Positions 2,652 through 8,505 of a stretch of DNA of 64,000 bases are shown piece by piece. The stretch spans positions 273,295-337,294 of the forward strand of contig NW_005434627.1 of assembly GCF_000315625.1 (NCBI RefSeq). The letters run 5' to 3'. The position numbers and the translations under genes were made by a program. The notes below the pieces were generated by a model. That model did not search any database. It worked only from the letters and a program-made list of their open reading frames with translations, and had not been told where the DNA came from. Position 1 is the first letter of the stretch. The number at the start of each line of letters is the position of its first letter. The DNA comes from Guillardia theta CCMP2712 (lineage: Eukaryota; Protista; Cryptophyta).

Positions 2652-4409
2652 CCTCTCAAGACTTCTGCGAGCCCCAGGCCAAGAGGTAAGTTTCGAAGGT
2701 GATAGTGAGAGGTGAGAAGAGAAAGTCGAGTGGTTAGATTGATTATCATACCATCTTGAAACAAAGAATGATGTACCTCTTACACCCTACACATTATCTC
2801 TCTACTACATTCCTGTACTTCTAATTCGCTCGCTTCATTCATGTACTTCTAGTTTGCTCAAATCACTTCCCCATCATCTGGCCATGCTATCACATATTTC
2901 ATTCTGTCCTCCGTCCTCCGTAAAGAATCCCTCCAGTAATTCAACTTCTTGAACCATCCTTCAATATTCAAACAACACGTATCACACCTAACATGTTTCC
3001 TTCCTACTGCCTGCTCGATTTGCACTGACCATAAAAGCCCGCAACTTCTGCATCGTCTGGTAGGCCTCACACCGCACAGCATTGCATCTACTGTCTGCTC
3101 TCATATCCATTTTGCTTCCTCGATCCATCTTGATCCAATGTTCTTCGTAGCCAGTCATAGGTTTTCGCCTCAATCACCAATAAACACTGCTCTCCATATC
3201 CATCCCCTGCTCCTTCAATCCAGCATCTTTCAACATATCCATCGCAACCACCATCATCGTCTCATCCCACTGCCCTATCATCCTCTGCATCTCACGGTTG
3301 CGATCGTTGTCGCCACCGTCTCCAACTCCACCATCGCTGTCGCCTGCTATACCCTGCATATTGGCCGCTGTATTTCCCGCCCACTCGGAACTCAATTTCC
3401 CCACAAGCGTAGAAACGCTGGGGTACGATTGAACTATATTAACTAAACTTAATTATACTAAATTTAGTTTATTACCAAATTTGTACATCAACTTAGCTGC
3501 ATTGTGGTATGAAGGTGGGCGAAATTTGAAATTATTTTTGGAGAAAAGACCCTTGGTGGGAGAAGTCTCAATACATTCATTGGGTGGCGGGGGTGCGATT
3601 CCATGGCAACAATATATTTTCCCCGGGGGGTATCTATTCCTGTAAATTGGTAGATTATCATTAATTTGTGTGAAAAATTGGACAATTTTCTCATATAATT
3701 TTAAAAATTTGAAAAATCTCTCGAAAATATAGCAGTTGTGTGAAAATTTTAACATCCCTGTCCTGGCCCCTAAAAGTCGAAAGGTTGAGGAGGGGTGGGT
3801 ACACACAATATATAGACAGGGGTACTTCAAAATGAGTTGGGGTGGAACGCGGAGTTTCACATACCCCAGGGTGGGTGGTTGATGCGGGGGGGTGGTGGTA
3901 TAGTTGCCAAGGTAGTCCTTGGTCCAGACATTAGCGTTATGTTGTGAAGGTTGTAGAATTCAGAGGTGGTGGGGTAGGGTGTCAAAGCTGAACTGTAAGG
4001 GTAGGTGGGTGTATGATGGGTCAGGTGCTATTTTATAATCAGACAGCGGTGAAAACTTATAAAATTAGCTTGTCATTTGAAATTTTCTGATTATTTTGAA
4101 AATATTTTTTTGACCCTTTACAAGCTTTTGTTTTTCCTAAACCCTCTAAACCCTCTAAACCCCCTCCTTTGTTTGCTCCGGTTTGCCCTTCTTTTTCAGT
4201 CAATAAAGGATAATTTGTTTTTGGGAATGCGCAAGCAGAACAGTGGGATGGAAGAGAGGAGGAGAGGGGGAAGGGGGAGAGGGAAGAGAAGACAAGGGAG
4301 GGAGGGAGTGGTAGGAGGGAGCGTTGCTAGTAGGGTCAGGAGGAGGACGTGGAGGAAGCAGGAGGAGGAGGAATGAGGAGATCAGGGAACGGTGAACATC
4401 TTACAGCGC

Positions 4410-4988
4410 ATGGCGGTAGGAACAGGTGGATGAATCAGGGTCAGGGAAAGAGGAACTGTGAATAAGTCTAGATGCAGCCGCCCACTCACCTCTGTTGTAC
4501 AGGTTCAGGAGTCACTCGTGCGAGCTGGTGATCTTGTTATCATTATGGGTGTGCGAAAGTCTCTTCAGGTACCAATCCTCTCATTTGCTCCTTTGCCAGC
4601 CGCTGAAACACTCCCGCAGCCTTGGGAGATCGTCTTCCTCGTCGTGTTCTGGGGATCATTTACATGGTAACTCCTCTGCTTACCCTCGAAGCACCTGCGA
4701 ATGATGTGCGATCGCGTGCTATGGTGAATCGTGGACATTTGCAGGTACATGAGCCAGTGGGACGGGGAGCTAGTCAACAAGACGTTCTTCTGGCAGTTCG
4801 TCTCGCTCTTCTTCTGGTGTTACAATCACTTAGGTACGCCCCTTGTTGAGTTCGGGGCTCACGTCTGCGGTGACTTGCGCCTGCTGCCGGCAGCTTCCTT
4901 CTTCGGGCTGCTGATGGCTATTGGAGGGCTGTACACAGCAGGGGGGCAGCTGATGGGGGGGATGGGGAGCTCGAAGAAGAGGAGATAG
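4410..4988 (+). CDS. Small hypothetical membrane protein, multi-exon; start uncertain
   Basis: GT-AG-bounded hydrophobic exons PWEIVFLVVFWGSFTW / YMSQWDGELVNKTFFWQFVSLFFWCYNHL / ASFFGLLMAIGGLYTAGG...SSKKRR*. Confidence 0.4.
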
Positions 4989-5264
4989 CACTTGTGCATT
5001 CAATATCAGCATCTTGTCCGATCCCTTTCTTCCCTTCCATGTCAACGCGCGCTCCTCCCCTCCCCAACTTTTCTCAGGCGTCCAATCATCGGGAAACAGG
5101 AGAACGGGGATCCCAAGAAGGGGATGAAGGACAAATGGAATGCTGAAATCGTGCCTGAGTTGGTTTTCTCCTCCTTCAGGCAGTTGTTGCAAAACCTGCC
5201 AAGGTTCTGTTGCTCTTGAACCAGTTCAAAGATGGATGATAATATGCTCTTGACCCGGCCTGAC

Positions 5265-7517
5265 CTATCGGAATCCAAGCAGGCGCTGTTTCTTCTCGGC
5301 AGGCATGATAGCTGGATGACAGGTGTGAGTCATCAGGGGATGGAGAGGGGTAGATGCCAAGGATCATCGAAGGGACAGGATGAGGTGCTGGGAGTGGTGC
5401 TGGGAGTGGGAGTAGTTACCTGATGCAGGCTGTTCTCTCAAGAGCTCCACGAAGCTATTCCACTCATCTTGACATTAAGAAAACATTCGGAAGGAGACAC
5501 GAGACACGAAAAACGTCAGTCATGACATCGGCAGAGGACAAGAGAATTACTGAGGTCCAAGGCCCCGTCTTGGTTCCTGTCCGCTTGTTGGAAGAGAGAT
5601 AGCAGTCTGCATGATGTCAGAGTCGGTCGGTCGCATCCAAACTCGTCACAATGTCTCATCGGGGCGGTAGCCCAGCTGCTGGATGGCTGCGCGTATCTGA
5701 AAGGAAGGAGAGGAGGAGAGTGAGCGGGTGGTGTACAGTGCTGCTTCAGCATTGTTGAGTGTCCTGTCACCTCTGGAAGCTGCAGGATCCCATCACGAGA
5801 AGTGTCAGCGAGGTAGAAGATCAATCTGCTGTTCTGCTGGATCCTCTCTCGCGTGCTGGACTGCGTCCGCTGTCAGACCTGGCGGGCACTGGCAACCAGC
5901 CAGCACACCGCATCCGCCGGCCCGATGGGAAGGAACTTGGCTGAGGACGATCTCGCTTGAGCATACTGCCATCGGTTTGAGTGGAGGAGGAAGCAACTTT
6001 CGACTTGTCAGACCTTCAGCTGGCTGGTGCTTGCCAGGTGCGCGTCGATGAGCGTGTAGGCATCGTAGATGGCGTGCACCCCCGCCGGAACCTGTCAAGG
6101 AGCGTCCAGTCAGACGAACTTGTTCTTCTCACTATCACAGAAGGAAGTCCGGAAGGTCTGACCAGGAAGTTGTATCCTGACAGGATGTAGAGCACGCCGA
6201 ACCAGAGTCCCGTCAGGATCTGAACAGGTTGGAGCATCTCACCATCTCACACCGGCTGCCTCGAAGACGATACGTACCTGTAACGGGACAACAACCGAGT
6301 TGTCTTTCCAGCTCCCGCCGATGGACCAGTGGGCCAGCCCAAACACCAATGAGGATGCCAGCAATCCCAGCAGAACGTTCGGATCTCCAGCCTGTCGGAC
6401 ACAGGTACAAGCTCAACCACAAACGTTTCATCGCCAAGATTGCATACAAGACATGTGCAAACTGAGTACGCAGGACATATTCTACATAGAACATGTTCTA
6501 TCTTCTACCTAGACGATCATGTTCTGCAGGCATGTTCTATACACACGTAGGACAAGACATGCTCTCCACACCTCTCCCAGCCTCTTGGCCAGAATCGGCA
6601 GACCCAGGGCGCGGAAGGACAGTTCTTCGCATAACCCGGTAATTGCACCAAGTACCGACGAGACCCCTGGAGCAAGTTTAGAGGAGCGAACGCTATGTGA
6701 CACGAGTCAACCGAAGGCAAACGGGATGTTCTCCTTGGATCCGAACAACTTGAGCGCAAGTATGTTGGTAGAGAAGTTGATGTCGATGAAAGCCTTCGAC
6801 TCCGACGTAGAGATTTTGTTTCCCAGGAACAAGATCGGGAACGAACCGAGCACGATCAGGATCAGAGGGAGGATGCCGACTCCTGCGTTTCCTAGGGCTG
6901 TGATCGTATCCTCGTACTGAAGTGTCTGGATGGTAAACAGTGATGTCACCCCTAGCAGAGCCTGATTCCTGTCGCATGTTGCAATGAATCCCAACCCTCC
7001 ACCTCCCCCCTCCCCACAAACAAACACCTCAAGAGGCTCCAAGCGAGGAAAAGATTGCCCGACTCCATAACTTCGGCAGAGAAGTACGCTGCCCCCTTCT
7101 CGCTGTCCTCTGGCTGTTATGAGAAGAAGGTGAATGTGACCTTCATAGAGCCTCTCCTCCACAAACCTTCACGTTGCAACGCGCTCCTCCGACCAGCGAG
7201 CGACCACGGCGGATGCGTTTGAAACACGATGGCACCGGAGAGGAACGGGAGCAGCGATTGTTTGCTCTGATCCCTGGAAGATGCTTGCAAGGGGAATGGG
7301 AGAAAGCCGCAGGAGCGAGCAAGAATGCGAGATCCGCGATGTGGAACATTGGTGAGGAGGATGGGGACGAAGGGGATAGGAGAGAGAGAGAAGAGGCCTG
7401 GGAGGACCAGGAGCGTTGGAGGAGGGAGGAAGACAGAGCGGGAGATATGATCGTGCGGGGCGAGGATGAGGGTTTGGCTGGCGAGGCAGCTGCCCAGGAC
7501 GCAGCGGCCAGCACCAT
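5265..7517 (-). CDS. CPBP/Abi (type II CAAX protease-like) intramembrane metalloprotease with two C-terminal EF-hands; probable N-terminal targeting peptide
   Basis: Exons give GLCEELSFRALG (EExxxR), SSLVFGLAHW (FxxxH), VPAGVHAIYD (HxxxD), several TM segments, and EF loops DTSRDGILQLPE and DRNQDGALDLNE. Probable last exon AIMPAEKKQRLLGFR*. The N-terminus is Ser/Arg-rich. Confidence 0.82.
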
Positions 7518-8505
7518 GGCGTGTGGGTACAAAATGAGGGAGGTGCAAGGGGTGGTATAATCGGGCTAAATGACGAGTTTAGGGGGTAGGGTACAAATCT
7601 GTATGGGGTGGGTACTGAAGCTGGTATTCAAGGGGTAGGTACTGATTTTGACTGAAAAGTTCTTTGCTAGTCAAACGGCTCAGGATGTATGGCAACCAAC
7701 CGGAGAGAAAGGAGGGAGAGAGGGAGAGAGAGAGGATGGGAGGGAGAGAGGGGAAGGGAGGGGAGGGGAGGGAGTGAGCGAGTGAGCGAGTGAGCGAGTG
7801 AGGGAGAAGAGTGAGCGAGCAAGCGAGCGAGGCAGGGAGGGAGGGGGAGGGAGGGAGGGAGGGAGGGAGGGAGAGGAGGGAGGGAGAGGGGAGGGAGGGA
7901 GGGAGGGAGGGGAGGGAGAGGAGGGAGGGAGAGAGGGGAGGGAGGGGAGGGAGGGAGGGAAGGAAGGGAAGGGAAGGGAGCGGGGTAACGAGGGAAGGAG
8001 AGAAGGAGGGAGGGAAGAAGGGAGCCTGGTTCAGAAAGACAGGCAGGAAGAGAGGCAGGCAGGAAGGAAGCCCGGGCGGCAGGGAGACACCGCAGGAGCA
8101 GCAGGAATGGCAGGCACTAAAGCCGAGCGAGGAAGGCATGGAATTCAGGGAGCGAGGGAGGTCAAGGTGACAGGAGAAAGTGGAACGGGATAGATGTAGA
8201 AAGGAGGACAGTGACTGGAGGGGTAGGAGAGTGCAGACTTGCATTGTCTAGCTGCATGAAATGAGAAAATCTGGCGATATCGATCCTTGATCAGATCTGT
8301 TTTCTGCTTGAGTCGTTTGCATTCGTTAACATCATCGTGACAGATCGTTTTCTGTTGTTTGCGATCGCTGAAGGATTCCGACTAATCACGTTGCGTACGC
8401 AAATTCCTGCAGAGCTATAGTTTGATTCCCCTGCGTTCAACTTATATGACTCGACTCTGCGCTGGTTGAAGCAGAGACTAAGGGGCTATCAATTTGTTTG
8501 TTGCC

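Follow-up and report, generated by a model that had tools for sequence, protein, structure and literature searches.

Proteases of the CPBP superfamily are among the least understood intramembrane proteases, and beyond Rce1 we know of almost no substrates or regulators of its members. The plastid representatives SCO4 and AMR4 are important for plastid biogenesis by a mechanism that is opaque. Here we analyse a gene of the cryptophyte Guillardia theta CCMP2712, situated on the minus strand of a stretch of 64,000 nucleotides (nt) of contig NW_005434627.1 (positions 273,295 to 337,294; in the following referred to as the window, in whose coordinates positions of the gene are given), which encodes a CPBP domain followed by a pair of EF-hands. 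The gene appears to represent a small family of CPBP proteases tipped with EF-hands, which is conserved in algae and has an apparently undescribed architecture, and in the literature no description of a CPBP or CAAX-type protease with EF-hands was found. Considering all observations, the best explanation of the whole is a glutamate-dependent intramembrane protease of the CPBP type, which would be controlled by calcium via its EF-hand lobe and reside in the complex plastid. We assign a rough probability of 0.55 to this reading.

The protease MmRce1 (4CAD) possesses eight membrane helices, both ends on the luminal side, and a catalytic cavity that is open to the cytosol (PMC5874806). In common with this enzyme, the G. 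theta protein has the three catalytic motifs, the Pfam Rce1-like domain, and the helical fold over Rce1 residues 34-238, which are taken here as Rce1 helices 2-7. In contrast, counterparts of the Rce1 membrane helices 1 and 8 are missing, the last catalytic helix is followed by a soluble helix and the EF-hand pair, motif 3 ends in Asp instead of Asn, and the presequence points to the plastid and not to the endoplasmic reticulum (ER). As far as can be judged from the sequence, nothing suggests prenylated CAAX substrates. Because helix count and presequence differ, the protein is not an ortholog of Rce1, although it belongs to the CPBP superfamily.

Structurally, the membrane domain is matched best by SpdC, also named LyrA, an Abi/CPBP protein of Staphylococcus aureus (6U0O). 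SpdC is bacterial, lacks EF-hands, and is a non-proteolytic protein that controls its partner, the glucosaminidase SagB, whereas the catalytic residues are conserved in the G. theta protein. A further precedent for a CPBP protein acting as a non-catalytic scaffold or regulator is BCM1 of plants. Weak NCBIfam matches to Mrt-type CPBPs (E 3.6e-06 to 1.9e-03, well below the cut-offs) and to an EF-hand effector family were obtained as well. The myxosortases MrtC and MrtJ are CPBP enzymes trimming membrane-anchored C-terminal signals; they are prokaryotic and devoid of EF-hands, and due to scores far below the cut-offs the G. theta protein is not a member of this group. Arabidopsis SCO4 and Plasmodium AMR4 are CPBP proteins with retained motifs and unknown substrates, which are imported into primary and complex plastids, respectively, and belong to a cyanobacterium-derived CPBP clade (PMC7542359). 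For neither of them EF-hands were reported.

The same design, in which an intramembrane protease carries EF-hands on an extension that is soluble, is realized in the EF-hand rhomboids, e.g., Drosophila rhomboid-4 and mammalian RHBDL1/3. According to papers referring to the original study, calcium stimulates cleavage by rhomboid-4 directly via its EF-hands and substrate gating (Baker & Urban 2015, cited in PMC12615303, PMC13597478). However, the folds are unrelated, rhomboids being serine proteases whereas CPBP enzymes belong to the glutamate class, and the rhomboid EF-hands are N-terminal on proteins of the secretory pathway rather than the plastid. A preliminary description of the locus regarded the link from calcium to intramembrane proteolysis as unusual. 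This holds for the CPBP/glutamic class, for which such a link is apparently undescribed, but not for intramembrane proteases as a whole, since the EF-hand rhomboids Rho4 and RHBDL1/3 precede it. Fusions of EF-hand modules to a transporter or a protease for calcium control are also given by the SCaMC/APC carriers and the calpains, which differ in their catalytic or transport domains and in having four or five EF-hands compared to the single lobe of two EF-hands described here. The SCaMC regulatory domain occurs among the fold matches of our models (4n5x; 4zcu with Z 8.4).

Transcript and Gene Structure

The coding region comprises 13 exons with 1383 nt in total and encodes 460 residues in a frame that is open across all exons (Table 1); its exact bounds had already been given in the preliminary description. 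All 12 introns are of the GT-AG type on the minus strand (CT..AC on the plus strand) with lengths of 43-180 nt, and an in-frame stop is situated 16 codons 5' of the start codon at 7517. The initial model, built by hand from the six-frame reading, consisted of 12 exons with GT-AG introns throughout and an open frame. After alignment of RNA-derived contigs to positions 4900-7650, 10 out of its 11 introns were found to be matched exactly. The remaining one, a single intron 6014-5869 with its acceptor at 5869, was rejected in favour of the two 48-nt introns seen in the contigs, which surround a 57-nt exon (5965-5909, exon 8 in Table 1) and end with the acceptor at 5860. The reading frame is kept after adding this exon and moving the acceptor.

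The contigs are assemblies of short reads from runs that were only guessed to be RNA, but due to the lack of the 12 introns spliced RNA is their only possible source. The longest contig, obtained from run X5 (1686 nt, 7530 to 4975), is collinear with all 13 exons, and its length is fully accounted for by 13 nt of leader, 1383 nt of coding sequence, and 290 nt of trailer. A contig of run X9 (1594 nt), which belongs to a different study, is collinear with the whole model at every junction, and the same 12 junctions as in X5 and X9 were observed in X4, a run from a third study with another organism label. The junctions 6014|5965 and 5909|5860, which connect protease, linker, and EF-hands, were present in these three runs from three studies with depths of 18-268. 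Since every junction is crossed by a single contig, the exons of protease and EF-hands are located on one mRNA, and the fusion is expressed as one spliced mRNA. This settles, in favour of the fusion, the question whether both sets of exons share a transcript, by which the preliminary description had wished its own reading to be judged.

Run X4 additionally contains contigs that keep intron 12 (5285-5449), intron 11 (5438-5580), and intron 9 (5669-5800) and represent either unspliced RNA or carried-over DNA. Together, introns 9 and 10 measure 117 nt, and a transcript keeping both regains the EF-hand frame at exon 11 without a stop in between. Due to this preserved frame, a 102-residue open reading frame (ORF) at 5516-5824 displays both EF loops in raw ORF lists.

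Protease Domain and Predicted Fold

In agreement with the preliminary description, all three CPBP motifs are located in one spliced frame of the 460-residue model, namely EELSFR (motif 1, EExxxR) at residue 245, FGLAH (motif 2, FxxxH) at residue 280, and HAIYD (motif 3, HxxxN/D) at residue 326. EELSFR is invariant in the family, and the Asp variant of motif 3 occurs throughout. Considering the catalytic residues only (two Glu, Arg, two His, and Asp), invariance extends to family members in which overall identity drops to 30-40%. Single exons, which are short pieces, scored 16.0 bits (exon 4) and 14.2 bits (exon 5) with the Rce1-like Pfam profile PF02517 at a gathering cut-off of 22.4. Fold and family-score tests were read from the relatives P0002 (81% identical) and P0006 and not from the G. 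theta protein itself; P0002 scored 48.5 bits and the relatives 44-61 bits at the same cut-off. The hydropathy of the 460-residue model revealed no hydrophobic segment after motif 3.

AlphaFold models calculated with family alignments reached a predicted local distance difference test score (pLDDT) of 81.8 and a predicted template modelling score (pTM) of 0.76 for P0002, and a pLDDT of 84.2 and a pTM of 0.80 for P0006. In both models the helix of motif 3 runs unbroken for approximately 35 residues into the soluble linker, followed by the four EF helices. In an exhaustive structural comparison against 48,161 chains, the two solved CPBP structures were the best membrane-domain matches of both models: SpdC (6u0o) with Z 13.3 and 13.7 over 161-183 aligned residues, and MmRce1 (4cad) with Z 9.7 and 10.4 over 160-165 aligned residues. 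SpdC ranked first with both models, and MmRce1 fourth with that of P0002 and second with that of P0006. Taken by themselves, such Z values are modest for bundles of helices, but together with the motifs and the Pfam scores the assignment of the modelled domain to CPBP can be considered safe. A bacterial Rce1-like cluster of the Atlas matched with a template modelling (TM) score of 0.69, and a Foldseek search against the PDB, in which the membrane fold was missed, matched the EF lobe only (best E 0.028). As judged from sequence and models, a CPBP/Rce1-like domain in which no catalytic motif is missing forms the membrane part, and protease activity is predicted.

Model residues 25-233 align to Rce1 34-238, and the end of this match places the His of motif 3 on Rce1 His227. 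The eight-helix topology of Rce1 is not found, since a hydrophobic segment after motif 3 is missing and the models align to Rce1 34-238 only. Given this coverage, the absence of anything hydrophobic after motif 3, and the topology of Rce1, the mature N-terminus and the EF lobe should lie on the face to which the cavity opens. We infer that the soluble helix and the EF lobe stand in place of Rce1 membrane helix 8 on this face. When EF lobe and membrane domain were docked as two separate chains, a weakly supporting value of 0.36 was obtained, compared to 0.01 for the best of three controls; the runs agreed in at least 58% of contacts with a partner pLDDT of at least 68. As a scale for this value, the docking mark was reached by 51 out of 78 solved complexes and 2 out of 108 mismatched pairs, and 0.60 or less was given by only 5 of those 78 complexes and by all 4 mismatches that passed.

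EF-Hand Lobe

The two canonical 12-residue EF loops reported in the preliminary description are both present in the frame of the protease. Loop 1, DTSRDGILQLPE, is located at residue 384, and loop 2, DRNQDGALDLNE, at residue 420 (5581-5463), where it is interrupted by intron 11. In the G. theta protein both loops contain D1, S/N3, D5, G6, a hydrophobic residue at position 8, and E12, and they are spaced by 36 residues. The family profile matches calmodulins at E 1e-19 to 1e-22, and the relatives P0006, P0007, and P0009 pass the Pfam EF-hand_7 cut-off; single EF-hand exons, as pieces too short for this purpose, gave no Pfam match. In the models, the EF lobe resembles calcium-bound lobes of calmodulin, centrin, and troponin C with Z 8-10 and a root mean square deviation of 1.5-2.5 Å. 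On the basis of sequence and models, a calmodulin-like pair of EF-hands with predicted calcium binding makes up the C-terminal part.

Distribution and Conservation of the Fusion

Exon 3 alone, i.e., 85 residues upstream of motif 1, was used as query in a search against 1.84 billion representative proteins. The nine matches consist of the exon's own ORF and relatives, and every complete relative contains both domains. Shorter or broken matches are fragments or intron-containing genomic calls; one of the broken, intron-containing calls, P0024, still displays the beginning of EF-hand 1 behind the protease domain. P0002 (UniRef A0A7S0HFR6) is 81% identical to residues 153-460 of the model, including those of exon 8, and P0006 is a protein of Geminigera cryophila (MMETSP1102). 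In P0002, P0006, P0007, and P0009, the Rce1-like domain (44-61 bits) is followed by the EF-hand pair. Seven further full-length proteins combining both domains were added by a profile search. The closest relatives belong to cryptophytes, and source names for family proteins, where there are any, read only “CAAX protease family”.

The three catalytic motifs are kept in all 12 of the relatives listed. Except for P0024, all of these also carry, at a distance of 14 residues behind motif 3, a linker box Q-x-x-Y-A/S. Loop 1 is retained in 11 out of 11 relatives with a readable EF region and loop 2, which starts 36 residues after loop 1, in 10 out of 10 with an intact C-terminal half, and the ligand positions 1, 3, 5, and 12 are kept in each loop present. 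Due to the same motif order, linker box, and EF spacing in 11 relatives, the arrangement is not a matter of chance. With growing distance, the identity of the EF pair and of the protease core decreases in parallel (79 vs. 85%, 44 vs. 48-54%, and 30-35 vs. 35-40%). Since both parts are conserved to a similar extent at each distance, they would evolve as one unit, which argues for selection of the fusion. The box YFSAEV of exon 2 at the N-terminus is conserved and aligns with the relatives as well. The C-terminal tail is identical in 14 out of 14 positions in P0002 and similar in P0007, P0009, P0028, and P0032; it ends with LLGFR in G. theta and with LLGVR or ILW/FLW in relatives.

An intronless CPBP-EF member (gene 3001-4068) was observed in a GC-rich uncultured eukaryote, represented by two ENA contigs (L008/L009) of 62 and 107 kilobases, where it adjoins a monogalactosyldiacylglycerol (MGDG) synthase gene. 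A scan of prokaryotic genomes with the family profile resulted in 81 pattern sites and no confirmed one. In the ESM Atlas, a feature search gave no usable match and a shape search no large cluster carrying both domains.

A paralog search of the G. theta genome with exon 3, P0006, and P0009 revealed no second locus, all other matches being generic EF-hand genes; the gene is single-copy in G. theta. Stand-alone CPBP genes are present elsewhere in this genome. One of these is an intronless gene for 444 residues (L001, G000:C40:523792-527040, ORF 1477-2811 on the minus strand), with the strongest Rce1-like match (69 bits), which stops right after motif 3 and has no EF-hands. Its product is a candidate for a plastid paralog of the SCO4/AMR4 type.

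Presequence and Location

Presequences were read by eye. A Ser/Pro-rich leader (residues 1-56) is followed by Met57 (7349-7347), which begins a signal-peptide-like stretch of 15 residues (7349-7305) ending in small residues. Phe72 (7304-7302) is located directly after the small-x-small pattern of a cleavage site and opens a basic, transit-peptide-like stretch of 46 residues (7304-7167) with 11 Lys and Arg, 11 Ser, Thr, and Pro, and no acidic residues, behind which the mature N-terminal box is situated. The pattern of signal peptide and Phe was also found in the six relatives P0008, P0024, P0009, P0029, P0046, and P0003, in two cases in the ASAFAP form.

A signal peptide followed by Phe (ASAFAP type) marks import across all membranes of complex plastids of the red type. 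Work of Kilian and Kroth in 2005 and of Gould and colleagues in 2006 is said to have established Phe right after the signal-peptide cut as the hallmark of import into the stroma in cryptophytes and diatoms. Judged from this sequence pattern, the protein is probably imported into the complex plastid. The plastid-type presequence suggested in the preliminary description is thus retained with regard to its pattern, which fits and recurs in relatives, but not with regard to its position, since it starts at Met57 instead of the first ATG.

Proposed Mechanism and Alternative Explanations

In the proposed mechanism, the helix of HAIYD would be prolonged by a soluble helix of approximately 20 residues, to which one calmodulin-like lobe and a short conserved tail are attached. 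Binding of calcium to the EF loops would open the hydrophobic cleft of the lobe, which could then grip a segment in its vicinity. This segment may belong to the substrate, the linker helix, or the tail of the enzyme itself, and the grip would control entry of the substrate into the catalytic cavity as in rhomboid-4. With the EF lobe on the cavity-opening face, the sensor would be placed where it could exert such control. In this way, stromal calcium may be read by the sensor and coupled to cleavage of a membrane-bound plastid protein. Control of proteolysis by calcium via the EF lobe is suggested with the EF-hand rhomboids as the functional precedent. Going further, one may speculate that the conserved C-terminal tail rests in the cavity as a tethered pseudo-substrate and is pulled out by the calcium-loaded EF lobe, similar to calcium-dependent protein kinases (CDPKs), in which the calmodulin-like domain removes an autoinhibitory segment. 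We consider this particular version a long shot.

Several points limit the case for a calcium-controlled CPBP protease in the plastid. The side assigned to the EF lobe depends on the aligned ranges and on a review description of Rce1, and the docking supports a contact of lobe and membrane domain weakly. Run X19, the only raw-read RNA run, of which approximately 6% was read, yielded about one read on the gene's own strand, too few to bear on its expression, taking the first mate of this library as RNA sense, as judged from the poly(A) ends of the plus-strand neighbour. Furthermore, with SpdC as the top structural match of both models, the membrane domain might be a non-catalytic scaffold or regulator in the manner of SpdC and BCM1, whose partnership is made calcium-sensitive by the EF lobe. 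For no plastid CPBP has activity in vitro been shown, AMR4 having given none, but AMR4 requires its catalytic Glu in vivo (PMC7542359). Together with the invariance of all catalytic residues down to the lowest overall identities of the family, this renders a mere scaffold very unlikely. Concerning location, the ATG of Met1 lies 56 codons upstream of Met57 in good context and within the longest RNA contig, with no other ATG in any frame between both. The targeting signal may for this reason be internal, unless Met57 is the start used. A start at the first ATG would place 56 residues ahead of the signal-peptide-like stretch, Rce1 itself is an ER enzyme, and the presequences were judged by eye only, all of which would suit a calcium-regulated CPBP protease outside the stroma-facing plastid membranes, e.g., in the ER or outermost plastid membrane, the periplastidal compartment, or another endomembrane. 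Such a location is considered unlikely, since the Phe after the predicted cut recurs in at least six family members, in some of them as textbook ASAFAP, the region behind it is basic and hydroxylated and lacks acidic residues, and other plastid CPBPs are known with SCO4 and AMR4 (PMC7542359).

The EF lobe, in turn, may be no calcium switch in an otherwise identical enzyme, but a permanently folded module for docking, dimerisation, or substrate recognition, with or without structural calcium, in which case proteolysis would be constitutive or controlled otherwise. In most relatives loop 1 deviates from the canonical form by Thr at position 3 and the absence of Gly at position 6, the nearest ortholog P0002 carries Asp at position 6 of loop 2 and stays just under the Pfam EF-hand cut-offs (24.8 vs. 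25; 20.4 vs. 30), and an Arg at position 4 of loop 1, conserved across the family, suggests a role beyond metal binding. Many EF-hand pairs, e.g., EH domains, act as protein-binding modules, and EH domains occur among the fold matches. Due to the ligand positions kept in both loops in all clades, a loop 2 that is canonical nearly everywhere, and calcium-bound sensor lobes as top fold matches of the lobe, we regard a module of this kind as an improbable, though not a far-fetched, substitute for the calcium switch. The explanation that the fusion is an artefact of annotation or assembly, with protease and EF-hand exons derived from separate genes or transcripts, could draw on the unspliced X4 pieces over introns 9, 11, and 12 and on the assembly of contigs from short reads. 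However, its probability is negligible in view of the linking junctions observed in three runs from three studies, the frame open over 13 exons, and the independent full-length proteins with the same layout in other species, including the intronless gene of the uncultured eukaryote.

Feature Coordinates and Genomic Context

Table 1. Features of the CPBP-EF-hand gene of G. theta in window coordinates.
Feature	Position	Strand	Basis and remarks
5' untranslated region (UTR), up to the start of the longest RNA contig (X5, 7530)	7518..7530	-	X5 contig
Coding region, ATG at 7517, TAG at 5267-5265	5265..7517	-	
Exon 1, residues 1-117; Ser/Pro-rich leader, signal-peptide-like and basic stretches	7167..7517	-	Frame and RNA contigs
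Exon 2, N-terminal box YFSAEV (7086-7069) and start of first membrane helix	7028..7113	-	Junctions 7113|7167 and 6967|7027 in three runs
Exon 3, membrane helices before motif 1 and family-specific S..S...D.N.ST box	6712..6968	-	Model, RNA contigs, alignment
Exon 4, CPBP motif 1 EELSFR (6628-6611)	6572..6666	-	Pfam Rce1-like E 0.015 on exon alone; RNA junctions
Exon 5, CPBP motif 2 FGLAH (6343-6329)	6278..6391	-	Pfam Rce1-like E 0.054 on exon alone; RNA junctions
Exon 6, membrane helix between motifs 2 and 3	6163..6219	-	Model and RNA contigs
Exon 7, CPBP motif 3 HAIYD (6076-6062) and start of the soluble helix prolonging the last membrane helix	6014..6091	-	RNA contigs, models of relatives
Exon 8, linker, 57 nt / 19 residues	5909..5965	-	Junctions 5965|6014 and 5860|5909 in X5, X9, and X4; aligns with P0002
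Exon 9, EF-hand 1 entering helix and loop (5806-5771)	5771..5860	-	RNA contigs, motif positions
Exon 10, EF-hand 1 exiting helix	5650..5696	-	Model and RNA contigs
Exon 11, EF-hand 2 entering helix and loop residues 1-10	5551..5606	-	Model and RNA contigs
Exon 12, EF-hand 2 last loop residues (N-E) and exiting helix	5420..5467	-	Model and RNA contigs
Exon 13, C-terminal tail KKQRLLGFR (5294-5268) and TAG (5267-5265)	5265..5311	-	Model and RNA contigs
3' UTR, about 290 nt	4975..5264	-	X5 contig ends at 4975, X9 contig at 4997

A convergent gene on the plus strand (4600-5024) ends at approximately 4988, and poly(A) is added at 5021 and 5024. Its transcripts overlap those of the protease gene, the 3' UTR of which extends to 4975, by about 50 nt. 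In run X19 this neighbour is far more expressed, with a depth of about 69. The few X19 reads over the body of the protease gene (5268-7015) are on the plus strand, the sense of the neighbour's mRNA in this library, and may represent read-through or antisense RNA instead of mRNA of the protease. Approximately 200 nt upstream of the 5' end of the protease gene, a purine-rich microsatellite of the GGAG type covers 314 nt (7711-8024; 76 copies, 75% matches).

Implications for the CPBP Family and Complex Plastids

A calcium sensor at the inferred mouth of the active site would provide a built-in and testable regulatory handle for this conserved CPBP-EF family. It would also be the second independent recruitment of EF-hands to gate an intramembrane protease, after the EF-hand rhomboids. 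If the speculation on the C-terminal tail as a pseudo-substrate were true, the G. theta protein would be the first glutamic intramembrane protease gated intrasterically by calcium, and stromal calcium transients, e.g., those at light-dark shifts, would, in algae with complex plastids, cause a membrane-tethered plastid factor to be released. Independent of this version, the family points to a direct path by which calcium signals of the plastid would reach membrane proteolysis, both in cryptophytes and in further algae possessing complex plastids.

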